Below, in pieces: positions 8,941 to 38,029 of a stretch of DNA of 64,000 bases. The position numbers and the translations under genes were made by a program. Origin of the DNA: Macrostomum lignano (taxonomy: Eukaryota); NCBI GenBank assembly GCA_002269645.1, contig NIVC01000525.1, forward strand, positions 310,001 to 374,000, given 5' to 3'. Position 1 is the first letter of the stretch, and every line of letters starts with the position of its first letter. The notes under the pieces are model-generated. The model had not been told where the DNA came from and ran no database searches. It saw nothing but the letters and a program-made list of their open reading frames with translations.

Positions 8941-17135
<8,195 letters not shown>

Positions 17136-26926: not shown

Positions 26927-27939
26927 AGGATCTGTATTCAATGCTACAGGATCACTGGCAAAACACGTTCAAGAAAAATTGGAGCTTCTGACTTGTTGTG
27001 AAACCGGTCTTGTTTCAAAAGTATAACAGCATCTGTGTTTCTACCATAGACAATTATTTCTTGGCCTCCAAGAAACGCCTGATGGAAGTCTCAACTCATT
27101 TGAAAGAATGTTTTTTAGCCATAGACAATTATTTCTTGGAGTCCAAGAAATGAAAATACGAGCGTACACAGAGGAGATAGGCAGCTGGCCGGGCCAAAGC
27201 GGGGATTAAATTGCAAGTTTGCGTGTTGTCTATGGCCCAAACCTGTCTTTGCTCAGCAGGCTCTCAGTTTTGAATGACGACAAAAGCCATACTAATTTTA
27301 ACAAATACTCCACGAGGAGCTTGTCTTTGTAGCAAGTCAAATCAAATCAATTTTATATCTTGATAGATTTTTTACTAGCTAGTGTGTTTCCGTTGCTACC
27401 TGCCTGTATATTAATATTAAACTGTTTTTAACCGTTCAAATTGTGTAATAGATAATATATTAATATCCCGCGCGTAATACAGCTCGTACTACTGACATAA
27501 GTAGACAGATTCTAGATTTTCATGCCCCAAAAAGAATAGCGGCAGTCAATATTCATAGAGAATATGACTTGTTGCTGGTTAACTGTACTTTTATAAGATA
27601 CTTTCTAACTTATTTTCGTTATTTTTGTACATTATCTACCTGCTAGCGCTGTAAGTTAAGCAAAGTTGGCCGCGGTTAGTACGTAAACGTGGCTTTTAAT
27701 AGGCTTGAGAAGCTGAGATGCTTCCCATATTCACCCCGCTGAGCTTCTGAGCTGCCGCAGAAGCACGGAGGCAGGGTGGGAGTTGACACCCTTAAAGAAT
27801 TCATGATAGTCTTGACCAGGATTTTGCGGGCATAAAAATGAGAGCAAAATTATACACTGTTTGATTAAGCTGACTCATTTCATTGATTCTGTCAATCGAG
27901 TGCCATTGATAATTGTCCCTTAGTAATTGAAAATTACCC

Positions 27940-28470
27940 CCCAATCATTGAGAATCGCCCCTTAGTCATTGAGAATCGCCCCTTAGTCATTGAGAATCGC
28001 CCCTTAGTCATTGAGAATCGCCCCTTAATCATTGAGAATCGCCCCTTAATCATTGAGAATCGCCCCTTAGTCATTGAGAATTGCCCCTTAATCATTGAGA
28101 ATTGCCCCTTAATCATTGAGAATCGCCCCTTAGTCATTGAGAATCGCCCCTTAATCATTGATAATCACCCCTTAGTCATTGAGAATTGCCCCTTAGTCAA
28201 GCATTGAGAATCGTCCCTTAGTCATTGAGAATCGTCCCTTAGTCATTGAGAATCGTCCCTTAGTCATTGAGAATCGTCCCTTAGTCATTGAAAATTGCCC
28301 CTTAGTTATTAAGAATCGCCTCTTAGTCATTCAGAATCGCCCCTCAATCATTGAGAATCGCCCCTTAGTCATTGAGAATCGCCCCTCAATCATTGAGAAT
28401 CGCCCCTCAATCATTGAGAATCGCCCCTTAGTCATTGAGAATCGCCCCTTAATCATTGAGAATCGCCCTG
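27940..28470. repeat. 21-bp minisatellite (ttagtcattgagaatcgcccc)
   Basis: Tandem array visible. Confidence 0.96.
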
Positions 28471-30259: not shown

Positions 30260-30440
30260 GTAGCGGTTAGGTTCCAGGGTAGCTACAGAATGGGGTTCCA
30301 GGGTAGCTACAGAATGGGGTTCCAGGGTAGCTATAGAATGGGGTTCCAGGGTAGCTACAGAATGGGGTTCCAGGGTAGCTACAGAATGGGGTTCCAGGGT
30401 AGCTATAGAATGGGGTTCCAGGGTAGCTATAGAATGGGGA
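30260..30440. repeat. 24-bp minisatellite (gttccagggtagctacagaatggg)
   Basis: Tandem array visible. Confidence 0.93.
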
Positions 30441-30959
30441 TCCAGAGTAGACAGATTAGCTATCAAGTGCACACAATGTACTACTTCAATACATGGTTAT
30501 TTTCGCAGTCGCGCAAGAAAAAGCTCTTTCTCCTTTAACTGAGACTAATCTGTTAATTAGTGTAATTAGTTTTCCAGAGACACAAATTGCGGCAGTTGAC
30601 TCGAACTGCGCACTGGACAGAGTTGAGTAAATGGCGCAGTGTGTATTTCAATCCGTGGCGCACAAAACTGTTTAGCCGGAGCCGTTGGGAGGATTATAGT
30701 AGAGAATTAAATGTAGGTTGCCGAAAGGCTGTCAGCCAGGCAGAGGTATTAGTAATACTACTACTATTATCTATTAATTAGTATTATATGCATGCAGATT
30801 TTTCTGGCCAGTTGGGACGTGCGTGATTAGTGAATATTATATGCAATCATCTTATACGGATTCGAATTCACGCCAGTCTGGTATTTCACAAATTTTGCAT
30901 TTGTTAAAATCCAATCGGGATCACGTGGTCACTGACTTCTAAGAAAACGAACTCGAAGC

Positions 30960-32849
30960 TCAGATCAGCGTCTCGCGCGCGATCGGCGACTGCGAACTGT
31001 CGCCATAGTAACGGCGCACAATGCGCGGCGGCCGGTAGGCGCCAAAATCGGCAACGCCGGCGTCACCGCTGCCGGTGGTGGCGCCGTCGTTGAAATCGTC
31101 GCCGCAGAAGCTGCTCTCGGCGTAGCGCGGGCCCAGCCGCCTGGCCCGTCGGCCGGAGTTCGAGCATCTCTCGCAGCCGTTGCAGCCGACCACCAGCCGC
31201 GCCGGCCCAGTGCTGTAGGGCGGGGGCGGCTGCCGCTGATCGGCGAGCAGATGAGGTCGGGGAGGCTGCCGAGCCAGCAGTGGCTCCTGCAGGCACAGCG
31301 GCGGCGGCGGCGGCGGATACGGCAGCGCCTTGGAGGCGACGCCAGCGGCGGCGAACTGCGGAAGCAGCGGCGATGGCGGAGTTCGCGACCTCTCCGGCTG
31401 CTGCTGCTGCTGCCATTGCCGGAGCACCGGCGAGCTGCCTTGGTTCAACTGACGGTGGCGTTGGCATCGCTGACGATGTCGACGCCTCCTCTGCTCCCGG
31501 TGGCACCGTCGGCGGCTGGCGCTGCGCGCCTCCTCCCCGGCGCTCTCCTCGTCGACATCCTCGCTGGACCGGCCCGACTGGTACTCCATCTCCAGCTCCT
31601 CCGGCGCTGCCTCGTCGTCCTCCTCGAACTCATCTTGGTCTTCTTCTTTCGACTCGTTCCCGTCTCTCTCGTCTTCCTTCTTAGTGCCGCCGGCGCTCCG
31701 TCGACGCCGACGCCCGACGTCGCAATAGTCGACGCGCGCCCGCTGCAGGCTGGCCCGCTGCTTCTGGCTGGCGATGCGCAGCAGGATGACGTCGCACAGC
31801 ATGGAGGACAGGCCGAACAGGGCCAGGCCGCTGCCCAGGTTCATCGACAGTCTGTAGAAATCGAACCGGCCGCCCTCGCCGCTGACCGTGACGAAGATCT
31901 TGATGCCGTAGGCGTGCACCAGCATCCGACGGTCCTGGCCCTCGCTCCTGTAGTTGTAGGCGTACTGCACGGAGAAGCCCTCAATGTCCGTGCCTTTGCC
32001 GATGTCCAGCTCGCGGAAGTGGTACTTGGGCAGGCAGTGCTCCTCCGGCAGGTCGAAGTTGCACTGCCAGGAAATGTCGATGCCGAACGCGCCGCCGATT
32101 TTGTAGACCTCCTCGCTGGTGGTGCCAGAATAGGCGAGGATGTCGCCGAGGCGGAACACTGGGCAGTAGGTGAGGTTTGGGTGCGCCTTGTCGTACAGGC
32201 AGGTGTTCAGGTACTCGCTGGTCATCCAGTCCAGGATGTTGCGCCGTTTCTTATCGAATGCTCGAAAATCGACGCTGTTTTTTAGCTGGACGGTGAAGTT
32301 CCTGGCACGGGTGAGCACCGAGCCGACTGGCAGGTTGAAGGCGTCCTGACTGGGCGCCGGGCACCAGCCGTAGCTGATGCAGGTTCTCGTGTCCGGGCTG
32401 CACCGGCCCGTGCGCCGGCCCTGACTGCTGATGCTGCCGGCCAGACAATCGCCGTCCTGATGGCAGTGTCCGACCGACTCCGGACACTCGCTCATGGCCT
32501 GCTTGTCGGTCACCCGAGCATTTGTTGTAATGAAAATGGCGCCATTCATGATCGGTGGTATGATGTAATCGGCCGAGTCCCACACTCTGGCGCCGTAGTC
32601 CGGATCTCCCGACCTGTTCACAAAGTCCAGGCCCTTCACTTTGAACACCACGCCGCCCTCCGGCGTCTCTATAACCTGGTAGCCTTTCTTGTGCCAGATA
32701 ATGTAGAACAGGAAGTAGACAATGACAGACAGCTGCACGCTGCGGTAGAACAGGCCGAACTTGACGCTGCGAATCACCACCACTTTCTGCAGGCGGTACT
32801 CGAAGAACCCAGCCAGCATGCGGCTGAAGAACGATCTCAGGGAGCACAT
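30960..32849 (-). CDS. P2RX: P2X purinoceptor-family ion channel, intronless, 629 aa, with a non-canonical ATP site
   Basis: FFEY N-terminus, TM1 (LFYRSVQLSVIVYFLFYIIWHKKGYQ), FKVKG, WDSADY, GWCP, NFTV, YCPVFRLGDI, GGAFGIDISWQCNFD, all 10 extracellular Cys, and TM2 (MNLGSGLALFG...LCD). ATG at 32849. Confidence 0.95.
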   Translation of the reverse strand: MCSLRSFFSRMLAGFFEYRLQKVVVIRSVKFGLFYRSVQLSVIVYFLFYIIWHKKGYQVIETPEGGVVFKVKGLDFVNRSGDPDYGARVWDSADYIIPPIMNGAIFITTNARVTDKQAMSECPESVGHCHQDGDCLAGSISSQGRRTGRCSPDTRTCISYGWCPAPSQDAFNLPVGSVLTRARNFTVQLKNSVDFRAFDKKRRNILDWMTSEYLNTCLYDKAHPNLTYCPVFRLGDILAYSGTTSEEVYKIGGAFGIDISWQCNFDLPEEHCLPKYHFRELDIGKGTDIEGFSVQYAYNYRSEGQDRRMLVHAYGIKIFVTVSGEGGRFDFYRLSMNLGSGLALFGLSSMLCDVILLRIASQKQRASLQRARVDYCDVGRRRRRSAGGTKKEDERDGNESKEEDQDEFEEDDEAAPEELEMEYQSGRSSEDVDEESAGEEARSASRRRCHREQRRRRHRQRCQRHRQLNQGSSPVLRQWQQQQQPERSRTPPSPLLPQFAAAGVASKALPYPPPPPPLCLQEPLLARQPPRPHLLADQRQPPPPYSTGPARLVVGCNGCERCSNSGRRARRLGPRYAESSFCGDDFNDGATTGSGDAGVADFGAYRPPRIVRRYYGDSSQSPIARETLI

Positions 32850-34689
32850 CCTGGCCGGACTCTGGGAACCTGCCAACCGACTCTAGGAAAACCGGCCTTC
32901 CCTCCCGAGTAGAGCGTCTACCTTAAAGCGTCTACTGTCGCGTGGACGCGGAGGGAAGCTGCATGGAACTCGCGGATAGTGATTGGACAAGCAGCGCTGG
33001 CAACCCCCCTTCAAGCCCGTCCCCCCGGTCTCCTCCCTTCCATTCTCTCCAGAACCTTTTTCTCCAACTAGCGGCAGCTTCTCCCCATTGCCAATAAAAT
33101 TCAACACACTGGCTGCATGAGGCCCGATGGTGACAGGGACAGCAGAGGAGAGCGATATTGCCTGAGCAGGGAGGGAGGGGAGGAACGGGCGAGGGGCGCT
33201 CGACTACAGAGAAGAAGCATGAAGGCCTCGGAGACAAGGGTAAAGGCGTTTGGCAGAGGCTAAAAGGGGAAGAAAGGGCCTTTCGGGCTTGCGGCGCCAG
33301 CCCGCGGGGCAAGGGCGCTGGAGATTAAAAAAATGACGGAAAAGGAAAGAAGGGAGCAGAGAGAGCTGGGCGGAGAGATTGGAGATCTGAAAGACGAGTA
33401 TGGGAGGAACCGGCTAGAGGAAGAGAAAGTTCAGCCGATTTCGACCCGATATTTCCCCCTGTCTAATAAAGCTAGGGATGCCCCATCGAATCGCGGGCAA
33501 ATCCCAGTCCGCCTGATCCCGACTCACAGGCTCACTCTGTTTCTGCTCCGCCGATCATCTTGGCTAGAGCCCGCGCCTCTGGGGAGCGCGCTCAACCCCC
33601 TGGCAGGCGATATAGGCTTCATCATCCATCCCGCTGATCAGCCTCCCCCTCCTCTGATCCCTGCCAGTATCTCTTCTACAGGGAGACTTATACTGAGGAG
33701 CTGATCCCATGCGAAGGGGAGAAGACAGGCAGACCGACGGCTAGATGACGAGAACCCCTGCCCCGCGGCCTGAGACAATACACGCACATAGACGGCAAGT
33801 TTACGAATGCGGCTACCATAGGACAGCTTCCAGATCGAATTAAACAAAAGCTCGATAGAGAAAGAGAGAAAGAATGGTTTAATAAAACCATGGGCTGCGT
33901 AGGCGGAGGCAAGGCGAAAGAAGTGTGGGAGTGAGGCATAGGCCAGCTAAAATCGACTGCTGCACGGCAATAACACGAACTATAAGCCCTGGAAACTCAG
34001 AACTTGGAGCAAAGTGGGCAAGCACTCCAAGGACAGGCAGATCTGAGCAGGGGGGGGGGGGGGTTCAGCAGGAAAGAGGCGGAGAAAGAGGAAGTATACT
34101 TGGCAGCAACGTGCAACCTGCATCTGTGTGTTGGGGTTGCTGATCGATGAATAGGCTGCGTTCCCCATTTTTCCTCAAAAAAGGAGGGCCTGAGGGAGAC
34201 ACTGGCTGCTGCTCCCCCAGTTTCCACCCAACCACTCCCCCGCTCCATCCCCTAGGGTTGGGTGGTGTATGATGCGAGAAAGAAAACTGGGGATTTTTCG
34301 CCCCCAATTCCCCTTTCCGATCCTGTTTCGTCAAGCCCAGCTGGCTGCATAGCGAGGCCGAGAATGCAGCGCGTGAGCAATGGGCTTGGCAGCTCAATAG
34401 ACAAAAACATAATCGGGAGAGACAAGTCTATCGTCAGGTGCAGACTCAGAGACAGAGGCAGCTCGCTCTAATGCACTGAAATGTTTGCATATATAACATT
34501 AATAGATGTTTGGATTCTATCGTAGAATCTCAATTCAAATTTCGGCAGGTACATTTTCCCCGGAGTACTGCTCCCAGCTGAAAATAATTCCCGCGCAGGC
34601 GAATCGATATCGCGCGACTAAATTCGCTAATTTCATTTCTTAGAAGTGTGCAGCACCAATTAGATAGCTGCCTATCAGACTGCCTAATC

Positions 34690-35860
34690 TGCCTGTCTCA
34701 GCAGTTGCCCAGACTCTTAATCTCCTACCTGTCTCATTAGTACCCAGTCTCGCTAATCTATCTGCCTCATCAGTGCCCAGTCTCATCGATGTACTTGCCT
34801 CATCAGTGCCCAGTCTCCTCGATGTACCCGCCTCATCAGTGCCCAGTCTCCTCGATGTACTTGCCTCATCAGTAACCAGTCTTGCTAATCTACCTGCCTC
34901 ACCAGTGCCCAGTCTCCTCAATGTACCTGCCTCATCAGTGCCCAGTCTCATCGATGTACTTGCCTCATCAGTGCCCAGTCTCCTCGATGTACTTGCCTCA
35001 TCAGTAACCAGTCTTGCTAATCTACCTGCCTCACCAGTGCCCAGTCTCCTCAATGTACCTGCCTCATCAGTGCCCAGTCTCCTCGATGTACTTGCCTCAT
35101 CAGTACCCAGTCTTGCTAATCTACCTGCCTCACCAGTGCCCAGTCTCCTCAATGTACCTGCCTCATCAGTGCCCAGTCTCCTCAATGTACCTGCCTCACC
35201 AGTGCCCAGTCTCCTCAATGTACCTGCCTCATCAGTGCCCAGTCTCCTCGATGTACTTGCCTCATCAGTAACCAGTCTTGCTAATCTACCTGCCTCACCA
35301 GTGCCCAGTCTCCTCAATGTACCTGCCTCATCAGTGCCCAGTCTCCTCGATGTACTTGCCTCATCAGTACCCAGTCTTGCTAATCTACCTGCCTCACCAG
35401 TGCCCAGTCTCCTCAATGTACCTGCCTCATCAGTGCCCAGTCTCCTCAATGTACCTGCCTCATCAGTGCCCAGTCTCCTCAATGCACCTGCCTCATCAGT
35501 GCCCAGTCTGCTCGATGTACGCGTACTTGCCTCATCAGTGTCCAGTCTCCTCGATGTACCTGCCTCATCAGTGCCCAGTCTCCTCAATGTACCTGCCTCA
35601 TCAGTGCCCAGTCTCCTCAATGCACCTGCCTCATCAGTGCCCAGTCTGCTCGATGTACGCGTACTTGCCTCATCAGTGTCCAGTCTCCTCGATGTACCTG
35701 CCTCATCAGTGCCCAGTCTCCTCAATGTACCTGCCTCATCAGTGCCCAGTCTCCTCAATGTACCTGCCTCATCAGTGCCCAGTCTCCTCGATGTACCTGG
35801 CTCATCAGTGCCCAGTCTCCTCGATGGACTTGCCTCATCAGTGCCCAGTCCCGCTAATCC
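34690..35860. repeat. 33-bp minisatellite (gtacctgcctcatcagtgcccagtctcctcaat)
   Basis: Tandem array with variant units; open reading frames on both strands. Confidence 0.95.
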
Positions 35861-36103
35861 CTCGCAAATCTTTCAGACAAATTTGAATTACACTAGAGTT
35901 ACAAGTCAAAAATGAAGACCTCTCTTGTTAAATTTTGTTTCCACTTCTCAAGCAACAATAAACAAACGATCAGACCAACTCATACAGTTTATTTCAGCTT
36001 CTGTCTCCATCTGATTTAACGCATTACCGAACTCATCCGTACACTCGACTAAACAAAACTGTCAATCAAGCTAACAGACACAACGGCACAGTTAGGCTAG
36101 CTT

Positions 36104-38029
36104 TTAAGCCTCCATCGCGTTGGCATCGGCCTCGGAGTACTTGCCCTTCTCGGCGCCTCGGGCCCTGCCGGCGGCTTTGCGGTCCAACAGGCCGCGCCTG
36201 TCCCGGTCCAGCTTGAGCTTCGTGATCACCACCTGAGGCGGAATTCATAGGTGAGGGTCTTTGAAGTGAAGACTGCGGCTCTTGAAAGTTTGGTTATGGC
36301 GATTCTTAATGGGGCTGGGGGCGATTCCTAATGGGGTCGGGGCGATTCTTAATGGGGTTGGGGCGATTCTTAATGGGGTTGGGGCGATTCCTAATGGGGT
36401 TGGGGCGATTCTTAATGGGGTTGGGGCGATTCCTAATGGGGTTGGGGCAATTCCTAATGGGGTTGAGGGCGATTATTAATGGGGTTGGGGGCGATTCCTA
36501 ATGGGGTTGAGGGCGACTCATAATGGGGTTGGGGGCGATTCCTAATGGGGCTGGGCGATTCCTAATGAGGGTTTGGGGGCGATTTTTAATAGGTATTTTG
36601 CAATGGGGTTCTTAAAATGTTTTTGAGCAGCATGTAAAAGTCAAAAATTGAAAGTCAATAGTTCAAGTCTATTAGTGGGAGAGAAAAACCAGCAGTCGAG
36701 TCGAGAACACGCTAACCATACTAAATAGCAGGAAGCTTAGTCTGCCTGATGAGTAAAATAGTACTCAAATGTCTGGCCTTACAAATTATCAAAAGACTGG
36801 TTTCCAATCATTTTTGCTTCGCATGAGAGCAAGAGACGAAAAAAAGTTGCTTTTATATTAAAGAATTTCAGACGATGCAGTCAGGACAGGTGCATGCGTG
36901 TGTAGAAGCTAATATGGCAAAGGTGTGCGTTTCTAGATCCGAAAACAGCGTCATTGGAGGGGTGTTCTTCAAGCCGAAGGGAGCCGAGCCTAAGATGGGT
37001 GTCTGTGGAGCCTAAGATGGGTGTCTGTGGAGCCTAATATGGGTGTCTGTGGAGCCTAAGATGGGTGTCTGTGGAGCCTAAGATGGGTGTCTGTGGAGCC
37101 TAAGATGGGTGTCTGTGGAGCCTAAGATGGGTGTCTGTGGAGCCTAAGATGGGTGTCTGTGGAACCTAAGATGGGTGTCTGTGGAGCCTAAGATGGGTAT
37201 CTGTGGAGCCTAAGATGGGTGTCTGTGGAGCCTAAGATGGGTGTCTGTGGAGCCTAAGATGGGTGTCTGTGGAGCCTAAGATGGGTGTCTGTGGAGCCTA
37301 AGATGGGTATCTGTGGAGCCTTAGATGGGTGTCTGTGGAGCCTAAGATGGGTGTCTGTGGAGCCTAAGATGGGTGTCTGTGGAGCCTAAGATGGGTGTCT
37401 GTGGAGCCTAAGATGGGTGTCCGGGAAGCCTAAGATGGGTGTTTGTGAAGGCTAAGTTGGGTGTCTGTAAAGGCTAAGATGGGTGTTTGTGGAGCCTAAG
37501 ATGGGTGTCTGTGGAGCCTAAGATAGGTGTCCGGGAAGCCTAAGATGTGTTAGTGGAGCCTAAGATGGGTGTCCAGGCTAAGATGGTTGTCTGTAAAGGC
37601 TAAGATGGGTGTCCGGGAAGCCTAAATGCCTTACATCTTTTTTCGGTGAACTTGAAGCGAAATGGTGAACAGTAATAGAGGGGTCACGTCTAAAAAAGCA
37701 GAACTTCCGTCCATTATTACCTTGCTAGGATGCAGGTTAACATAGACGGTAGCACCGTTAGCCTTCTCCCTTTGAATCCGTTCCACGTGGATGACATACT
37801 TGGAACGATAGACTGCCACCACTTTGCCAGTCTGGGTGCCCTTGTGGTGACCCCGGACAAGTTGCACCTCGTCGTCTTTGCGGATGGGCATAGAGCGGAC
37901 ATTGTACTTGGTGCGCAGCTCCTTGGACAGCGGAGCCGACATCAGCTTGCGTCGAATGTGCGACGGCGCATTGAAATAGCGCTGGCGATTCTTCCGCTTG
38001 GAGCTGGTGACGCTCTTGTTGAACTTCAT
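36104..38029 (-). CDS. RPL26: 60S ribosomal protein L26 (uL24), 145 aa, 2 coding exons
   Basis: Exons 38029-37721 ([39 protein letters not shown]...HPSK) and 36232-36104 ([13 protein letters not shown]...MEA*), joined in phase 0. Confidence 0.98.
36295..36590. repeat. 21-bp intronic minisatellite (gggcgattcctaatggggttg)
   Basis: In the RPL26 intron. Confidence 0.93.
36988..37625. repeat. 22-bp intronic minisatellite (cctaagatgggtgtctgtggag)
   Basis: In the RPL26 intron. Confidence 0.96.

Follow-up and report, generated by a model that had tools for sequence, protein, structure and literature searches.

Mlig019017 of Macrostomum lignano: a selectively maintained P2X-family protein without the upper-body half of the canonical ATP site

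A gene for a divergent member of the P2X channel family, Mlig019017, lies in a stretch of 64,000 nucleotides of the Macrostomum lignano genome (contig NIVC01000525.1, positions 310,001 to 374,000), which is called the window below and numbered from its first letter. To our knowledge, functionally characterised metazoan P2X receptors all keep the Lys/NFR/Lys set of contacts to adenosine triphosphate (ATP), and the model of P2X ATP recognition rests on these residues. In Mlig019017, the upper-body half of the intersubunit pocket appears to be dismantled, with N293, F294, R295 and K313 replaced together with acidic partners at the human P2X3 (hP2X3) E156 and D158 positions. The gene is under purifying selection and is selectively maintained. 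The protein probably depends on normal P2X partner subunits for its function, or responds very weakly to ATP. Classing it among the canonical ATP-gated receptors would be wrong, given the ATP contacts missing from one face of its sequence.

Residues lost and retained in Mlig019017

Motifs were read in three alignments, namely a HMMER alignment to human P2X4 (hP2X4), an alignment of 20 sequences and an alignment of 165 sequences. The features referred to in the text, including the two transmembrane helices (TM1 and TM2), are the following.

30960..32849, minus strand: complete intronless coding sequence (CDS) of Mlig019017, 629 codons plus stop, a P2X domain and then a low-complexity cytoplasmic tail of 253 residues (list of open reading frames, ORFs; identity to cluster P0001)
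32881..32891, minus strand: pyrimidine tract plus AG, TTTTCCTAGAG, a possible trans-splice acceptor or transcript 5' end (sequence)
31758..32804, minus strand: P2X receptor domain, residues 16-364 (Pfam PF00864, phmmer, AlphaFold2, Foldseek)
32784..32798, minus strand: YRLQK (residues 18-22) in place of the N-terminal YxTxK/R, Thr replaced by L20 (alignments)
32688..32765, minus strand: TM1, residues 29-54 (AlphaFold2 helix)
32631..32645, minus strand: FKVKG, with the lower-body phosphate contacts K70 and K72 (hP2X4 K67 and K69) kept (alignments)
32343..32381, minus strand: CISYGWCPAPSQD, the family C-E-I...WCPxExD without its three acidic residues (I158, P166, Q168) (alignment)
32277..32300, minus strand: NFTVQLKN, T186 and K190 kept, adenine-contact L188 replaced by Gln (alignments)
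31959..31979, minus strand: GFSVQYA (residues 291-297) in place of GYNFRFA, NFR lost as S293, V294, Q295 (alignments)
31905..31928, minus strand: RMLVHAYG (residues 308-315) in place of RTLIKAYG, H312 at hP2X4 K313, R308 kept (alignments)
31773..31859, minus strand: TM2, residues 331-359, with NLGSGLALFGLSSMLCD including the conserved Asp D353 (31791-31793) (AlphaFold2 helix, alignments)
31725..31751, minus strand: SLQRARVDY (residues 367-375) at the C-terminal YxxxK trafficking motif, Y replaced by L368 and K by R372 (alignments)
30963..31721, minus strand: cytoplasmic tail, residues 377-629, with many R, P, E and S residues, a poly-Arg run, a cluster of acidic residues and PPPPY (sequence)

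At the upper-body positions, hP2X4 N293, R295 and K313 are replaced by S293, Q295 and H312, as the original prediction had read from the sequence and as all three alignments now agree. In addition, F294 is replaced by V294. The canonical state at these four columns is found in 32 (N), 33 (F), 34 (R) and 35 (K) of 36 other sequences. The WCPxExD motif reads WCPAPSQ, with P166 and Q168 in place of E and D; in canonical and other sequences E occupies the P166 column in 36 of 36 and D the Q168 column in 28 of 36. In hP2X3, E156 and D158 form salt bridges to the NFR Arg, R281, and to K299 (the K313 equivalent), and hold the Mg2+ of Mg-ATP (PMC6590987). Mlig019017 has thus lost both basic residues along with both acidic partners. 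The changes F294V, L188Q and P166/Q168 go beyond those noticed originally. L188Q alters an adenine contact (zebrafish L191), and Q188 is shared with the nearest paralog (P0024) and occurs once in the other 163 sequences.

The zebrafish P2X4-ATP structure assigns these contacts to faces. The phosphates are held by lower-body K70 and K72 of one subunit and upper-body N296, R298 and K316 of its neighbour, and the adenine/ribose contacts T189, L191, I232 and L217 belong to the lower-body subunit (PMC3866589). By this assignment, Mlig019017 is without any upper-body contact and has every lower-body contact except L188, the residues hP2X4 K67, K69, T186 and K190 all being present as K70, K72, T186 and K190. 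A single Cys or Ala substitution at each of the N293, R295 and K313 equivalents gives a half-maximal effective concentration (EC50) of ATP >3 mM or abolishes function in P2X1-4 (PMC2459275, PMC3874471). The proposed insensitivity of the homotrimer to ATP in the canonical mode is well supported by this mutagenesis, and a Mlig019017 homotrimer should not bind ATP canonically.

The loss is concentrated rather than general. A conserved set was defined as the 85 alignment columns with >=85% conservation across the P2X of outgroups and the canonical P2X of flatworms. Mlig019017 deviates at ten of them (L20, G65, I158, P166, R196, S293, V294, Q295, H312 and R372), and these ten take in all 4 of the 4 upper-body ATP columns (hypergeometric p=1e-4), which argues for targeted loss and not general decay. 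Among the 85 columns, 0-6 are changed in canonical flatworm P2X and 16 in the paralog P0024.

Two cytoplasmic motifs are changed as well. The alignments place L20 at the Thr of YxTxK, and L368 and R372 at the Tyr and Lys of YxxxK, in agreement with the YRLQK and the missing C-terminal YxxxK that had been reported from the sequence. Among canonical and outgroup sequences, 91% have this Thr; the paralog has Leu and 9/9 trematode divergent sequences have Met.

By profile, fold, cysteines and pore, Mlig019017 is clearly a P2X family member. Its match to Pfam PF00864 has E=1.2e-98 (331 bits where the cut-off is 27, spanning positions 1-352 of the 361 in the profile), and its best solved relatives are human P2X4, P2X1 and P2X2, with human P2X4 9bqh at the top (phmmer, E=3.7e-74). 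In the AlphaFold2 model (mean predicted local distance difference test score 76.8), helices 29-54 and 331-359 bracket a beta-rich ectodomain, and Foldseek with this model retrieved P2X structures only (P2X4, P2X1, P2X2), with E to 1.2e-35 and target-length-normalised TM-scores of 0.72-0.81. The ten ectodomain Cys (122, 129, 135, 150, 157, 163, 217, 229, 263 and 272) are kept, all in conserved Cys columns, of which nine are invariant and the C263 column is filled in >=90% of sequences. The TM2 signature (N-x-G-S-G ... conserved Asp) is present as NLGSGLALFGLSSMLCD; N337, G339, S340 and L344 are invariant in the 20-sequence alignment, and D353 sits in a near-universal Asp column of the 165-sequence alignment (hP2X4 D354). 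Pfam, AlphaFold2/Foldseek and the alignments agree here with the intact fold first described (10 Cys, both TMs, TM2 Asp, KVK and NFT).

Gene structure, paralogs and purifying selection

Mlig019017 is encoded by a single unbroken 629-codon ORF on the minus strand (window 30960-32849, ORF list), with the start ATG at 32849 and the stop at 30960-30962, giving a protein of 629 aa. The span first given to the gene, 31780-32849, holds for Met1 to the end of TM2, and the ORF runs a further 253-codon tail, to 30960. The window protein is identical to cluster P0001; other members are PAA61171.1 (P0022, Mlig019017g1) and PAA82904.1 (P0023, Mlig019017g2), also of M. lignano. Upstream of the ATG, a TAG lies in frame at 32883-32885, and the annotated partial CDS begins at 32879, immediately after the splice-acceptor-like TTTTCCTAGAG tract; the N-terminus of P0001, RLAGSQ, lies 10 codons 5' of the ATG. 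The GC content at third codon positions is 0.85 in the P2X domain and 0.81 in the tail. The GenBank annotation of M. lignano is a genome-guided transcriptome in which transcripts are cut at trans-splice and poly(A) sites (PMC5730564). Since the gene models come from this transcript-based annotation, the model of Mlig019017 implies RNA support, and the gene is apparently transcribed. The gene id Mlig019017 was mentioned neither in the literature searched nor in the supplement examined of an M. lignano neoblast/germline paper.

Three genomic copies are present in the assembly, in the window, in NIVC01002064.1 (L001) and in NIVC01000441.1 (L002). They are ~99% identical, flanks included, as expected for the sequenced line, which has a duplicated karyotype (PMC5730564). 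The codons for S, Q and H (293, 295, 312) are the same in 3/3 copies, and the ORF is unbroken across the P2X domain in 3/3. The tail reading frame is open in the window copy and in L001. L002 has lost 1 nt from a run of G at codon 387 (L002 ~11160; window ~31689). This deletion shifts the tail to another frame and accounts for the 467-aa model P0023 (PAA82904.1); it may be genuine, or an error of PacBio sequencing in a homopolymer.

Among the three copies, the CDS differ by 10 synonymous and 5 nonsynonymous changes, with rates of 0.022 per synonymous site (dS) and 0.0035 per nonsynonymous site (dN), giving dN/dS 0.16 (binomial p=5e-4 against neutrality). The tail alone has 6 synonymous and 2 nonsynonymous differences (p=0.004), which argues that the tail frame is real. 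The combination that would have counted against the original prediction, a gene without expression and under relaxed selection, is not what was found: the gene model is transcript-based (PMC5730564) and dN/dS is 0.16. A pseudogene reading was rejected on the intact ORF, this dN/dS and the conservation of the TM helices.

An exhaustive HMMER search of 1.84 billion representatives returned 1463 P2X proteins, and the nearest to Mlig019017 was the M. lignano paralog A0A1I8ISC6 (P0024), at 62% identity. Orthologs outside M. lignano were sought by word-indexed, exhaustive HMMER and metagenome searches, and all sequences except this paralog were <=46% identical. The two M. lignano proteins cluster at 100% bootstrap and share YxLQK, Q188, V294, WCPxP, the loss of N/R/K, and near-identical TM1 and TM2. 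They differ at the replaced contacts, where the paralog has V293, E295 and R312 instead of S293, Q295 and H312; its NFT reads QFT, and the KVKG strand is missing from its protein model. This model comes from an older assembly and carries a spurious 255-residue N-terminal extension; the protein is known only from UniRef/MetaClust, and its DNA was found neither in the window nor in the other loci examined.

Mlig019017 and A0A1I8ISC6 have 89% identity in each of TM1 and TM2 and 56% in the ectodomain. By contrast, the canonical pair Mlig014818 and A0A1I8JAE7 has 55% identity in the ectodomain, 48% in TM1 and 71% in TM2 (Fisher p=8e-4 for the contrast between pairs). Judged from these sequence comparisons, the TM part of the divergent clade is under unusually strong constraint and the upper-body pocket residues drift, as expected if the pore is used and the upper-body face is not. 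The M. lignano sequences P0006, P0026, P0066 and P0010 are canonical P2X paralogs; Mlig014818 and A0A1I8JAE7 are canonical P2X of this species.

The canonical Mlig014818 has >=6 exons across 12.8 kb, and Mlig019017 has no introns. A retrogene origin, attractive for this reason, was weakened by Trichobilharzia szidati, in which the canonical and the divergent P2X genes are both intronless and single-exon. The absence of introns in Mlig019017 does not therefore prove retroposition, and the state may be ancestral. A poly(A) remnant was looked for 3' of Mlig019017, and none was visible. The two T. szidati genes lie on one chromosome, OX235272.1, separated by ~35 Mb (divergent, L005 1001-2971; canonical, L006 1001-2929).

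The cytoplasmic tail holds a PPPPY (PPxY-type) motif at 31215-31229 (minus strand), which could bind Nedd4-type WW domains, and a 22-residue acidic cluster at 31581-31646 (minus strand); together they are potential trafficking or ubiquitination signals.

The upstream neighbour of Mlig019017 is a ribosomal protein L26 gene, with a C-terminal exon at ~36104-36232 (minus strand) in the window and positions 5411-7319 in L001 and 4721-7143 in L002. In L001, the P2X gene is followed ~9 kb downstream by a gene for a mitochondrial carrier. Synteny around the P2X gene is kept in the genomic copies. Minisatellite arrays flank the gene at 27904-28468 (21 bp x27), 30270-30450 (24 bp x7.5), 34726-35850 (33 bp x34), 36298-36584 (21 bp x13) and 36986-37625 (22 bp x29), consistent with the 15% share of simple and tandem repeats in the M. 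lignano genome (PMC5730564). Both strands carry long spurious ORFs generated by these arrays, 34640-35758 and 34773-35915 among them. Elsewhere in the window, the ORF at 15273-17093 (minus strand) has a protein kinase N-lobe at its start (PF00069, residues 4-57, E=1.8e-8) and is probably one exon of a kinase gene. GC content over the window (1-64000) ranges from 28% to 63% in 2-kb windows, with an AT-rich block at ~42-52 kb.

An accessory subunit and its alternatives

The reading favoured here, put forward tentatively, is that Mlig019017 forms part of the pore as an accessory subunit, joins canonical P2X in heterotrimers and has no full ATP site alone. All three ATP sites would be defective in a Mlig019017 homotrimer. 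If Mlig019017 joined Mlig014818 or A0A1I8JAE7 in a heterotrimer, its intact lower-body face could pair with the intact upper-body face of the neighbour, and a trimer with canonical and divergent subunits at 2:1 would keep two working ATP sites, which should be sufficient to open the channel. Two occupied sites are enough for P2X opening, and heteromers rescue subunits with dead sites (PMC3866589). The role of Mlig019017 would then be accessory or modulatory, possibly dominant-negative, as a partner that changes the number of ATP sites. Gating and desensitisation might be altered via the lost N-terminal Thr, and surface stability and trafficking via the lost YxxxK and the long PPxY-bearing tail. 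Homomers of YxxxK mutants show poor trafficking or surface instability, and heteromerisation rescues these mutants (PMC3360091).

The pattern of loss favours such heteromers, because the phosphates are shared between the faces of two subunits (PMC3866589) and all the lost contacts fall on one face. The replacements also differ between the 62% identical paralogs (S/V, Q/E and H/R), as expected for an unused face. A modulatory subunit of heterotrimers is the best fit among the alternatives first offered for this gene, in view of the one-face loss, the lost YxxxK and the presence of canonical paralogs. Heteromeric assembly of Mlig019017 and all the functional consequences are what we infer from this pattern.

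Several points weigh against this reading. TM1 is only 30-37% identical to the TM1 of canonical M. lignano P2X, and TM regions matter for P2X assembly (PMC3866589). The retention of 4/4 lower-body contacts is not significant alone, as 88% of all conserved columns are kept, and the retention counts across flatworms are not phylogenetically independent. The P0024 model is without the KVKG strand; if this is real, the intact lower face is not clade-wide. L188Q changes an adenine contact on the retained face. Lastly, Dictyostelium P2XA is an ATP-gated homomer without NFR (PMC2633282), and for this reason a "non-purinergic" status is not decidable from sequence.

The same P2XA supports a somewhat unlikely alternative, that Mlig019017 forms a homomeric or divergent-clade-only channel that is still ATP- or nucleotide-gated, with very low potency or altered requirements. 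Such a channel might be located inside the cell or in an acidic compartment, with H312 protonated and ATP abundant in the lumen, and would then resemble Dictyostelium P2X and lysosomal P2X4. P2XA is without NFR and one Lys, yet it is ATP-gated (EC50 ~100 uM) and intracellular. The intact lower-body contacts and pore of Mlig019017, the very strong conservation of TM1 and TM2 in its clade, and the recurrence of K to H in schistosomatid divergent P2X would all fit, and the loss of YxxxK predicts poor surface retention and lysosomal routing. However, the single substitutions in metazoan P2X1-4 that give EC50 >3 mM or no function are here three combined, with both acids lost, and the Glu of the paralog at the Arg position is a charge reversal; the difference in replacement residues between the paralogs also argues against this alternative.

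It is distinctly improbable that Mlig019017 is a duplicate in functional decay or with a purely dominant-negative effect, still transcribed as a relic but without regulated conductance. Its ATP contacts, YxTxK and YxxxK are lost, one genomic copy has a frameshift in the tail, the paralog model is more degenerate (16/85 conserved columns changed, KVKG strand missing), and in Dictyostelium, P2XC and P2XD suppress P2XB currents. Set against this, the P2X-domain ORF is intact in 3/3 copies, dN/dS is 0.16 (p=5e-4) with the tail also under selection, 75/85 conserved columns are kept, all 10 Cys included, and TM1/TM2 are 89% identical between paralogs with a 56% identical ectodomain. The frameshift itself could be an error, as the assembly is from PacBio reads and the site is a G homopolymer.

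It is very unlikely that Mlig019017 keeps the P2X fold but now answers to a stimulus other than nucleotides, be it protons, metal ions or some other small ligand. In favour of this, the phosphate-binding network is gone with fold and pore kept under selection, His stands at the Lys position, an HCH motif lies in the head domain, and non-nucleotide ligands were suggested as a possibility for the silent Dictyostelium P2XC and for P2XD by the authors who studied them. Against it, no new pocket residue is conserved (S/Q/H against V/E/R in the paralog, highly variable in trematodes), the pattern looks like relaxation, and no non-nucleotide-gated P2X was found in the literature surveyed. The originally suggested gating by another ligand or by protons finds no support here, and the S/Q/H and V/E/R states of the 62% identical paralogs argue against a re-tuned pocket.

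Mlig019017 is a natural, selectively maintained metazoan subunit from which one pocket face and its salt-bridge partners are removed and in which the pore is conserved. It offers a natural experiment on the number of ATP sites needed per P2X trimer, on dedicated accessory P2X subunits, and on the co-evolution of YxTxK and YxxxK with ligand binding. Experiments are warranted by the dismantling of a single face and by its recurrence among parasitic flatworms. Gene-knockdown studies have been published for M. lignano. Transgenesis is also available (PMC5730564), and with both tools the question is testable in this animal.

Comparison with other P2X proteins and with known systems

The canonical flatworm P2X proteins SchP2X, Mlig014818 and A0A1I8JAE7 share with Mlig019017 42-46% identity, the fold, ten Cys, both TMs, the TM2 Asp, KVKG and NFT. 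They differ in keeping N293, F294, R295, K313, the WCPxExD acids, YxTxK and YxxxK, all of which Mlig019017 is without. Their loop before C157 is five residues longer than in Mlig019017; this loop indel is homoplastic across the P2X family. Schistosoma mansoni SchP2X is an ATP-gated cation channel with an EC50 of 22 uM (PMC3853471), and functional characterisation in flatworms was found only for this canonical SchP2X in the literature searched. Surveys of flatworm channels merely count P2X genes (PMC4794918).

A second set of divergent P2X forms a trematode clade (99.5% neighbour-joining (NJ) bootstrap) with members in Trichobilharzia, Schistosoma margrebowiei, Opisthorchis/Clonorchis, Fasciola, Fasciolopsis and Echinostoma. 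The members are annotated "P2X purinoceptor 4", and no description or characterisation of the clade was found in the literature searched. Like Mlig019017, these proteins have lost the YxTxK Thr (replaced by Met), NFR, the E of WCPxE and the YxxxK Lys. Most members have H, Q, T or N in place of K313, and K67, T186 and K190 are mostly kept. Single states, S293, Q295 and H at K313, are shared with Mlig019017, the change of K to H recurring in schistosomatid divergent P2X. Large stretches are inserted into the head domain of the trematode proteins, behind WCP and into the left flipper, none of them present in Mlig019017, and identity is 33-38%. Over 11 divergent flatworm sequences, the canonical lower-body contacts are present in 26/42 cells and the upper-body contacts in 5/33, counts that are not phylogenetically independent.

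Common ancestry of the Macrostomum pair and the trematode clade was considered and is only a possibility. Their joint node has an NJ bootstrap of 47%, long-branch attraction is possible, the pair has 3 shared-derived residues in common with the divergent trematode proteins and 5 residues in common with canonical flatworm P2X, and the loop indel is homoplastic. It is unlikely, though worth stating, that Mlig019017 and the trematode clade stem from an old flatworm lineage, or from repeated convergent origins, of one-faced P2X subunits that have the lower-body half only, or that the clade is a P2X-fold channel no longer nucleotide-gated. If one-faced subunits do exist, obligate heteromeric P2X with <3 ATP sites would be normal in flatworm purinergic signalling. 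The same loss pattern in proteins of Schistosoma, Fasciola, Opisthorchis and Clonorchis bears on the annotation and pharmacology of parasite ion channels.

Partial losses were also seen outside flatworms. The hagfish P2X3-like proteins of Eptatretus burgeri and Myxine glutinosa (P0068/P0167) have an intact lower half, KKTK, and read GYSFKYG/RNLFQLHS, which gives S, K and Q at the upper-body positions. In the bryozoan Watersipora subatra (P0090), the lower half KKTK is intact and the upper half is degenerate (K, H, K). The opposite pattern, with N/R/K kept and lower-body contacts lost, occurs in P0013 (Logan SRR33002330, L004), P0032, P0115 and P0127 (the tardigrade Paramacrobiotus metropolitanus), whose lower-body states are KSTS, KFSS, QNSR and NAVK. 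If upper-half-dead and lower-half-dead subunits co-occurred in one species, complementary obligate heteromers could form.

The Dictyostelium receptors P2XA-E resemble Mlig019017 as natural P2X without NFR. P2XC is silent, P2XC and P2XD are dominant-negative on P2XB, and the receptors are intracellular with low ATP potency. They differ from Mlig019017 in their ~16% identity to metazoan P2X, in having no ten-Cys pattern, and in keeping K289, the Lys equivalent to K313.

Mammalian P2X6 is a model for the mode of action proposed for Mlig019017: it forms no functional homotrimers and works in P2X2/6 and P2X4/6 heteromers at 2:1 stoichiometry (PMC3866589). Unlike Mlig019017, however, P2X6 is listed with conserved ATP-site motifs, and its defect lies in assembly and in exit from the endoplasmic reticulum (PMC3866589), so that the likeness is one of functional analogy only. 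One-faced P2X subunits would likewise be analogous to the non-agonist-binding structural subunits of Cys-loop receptors.

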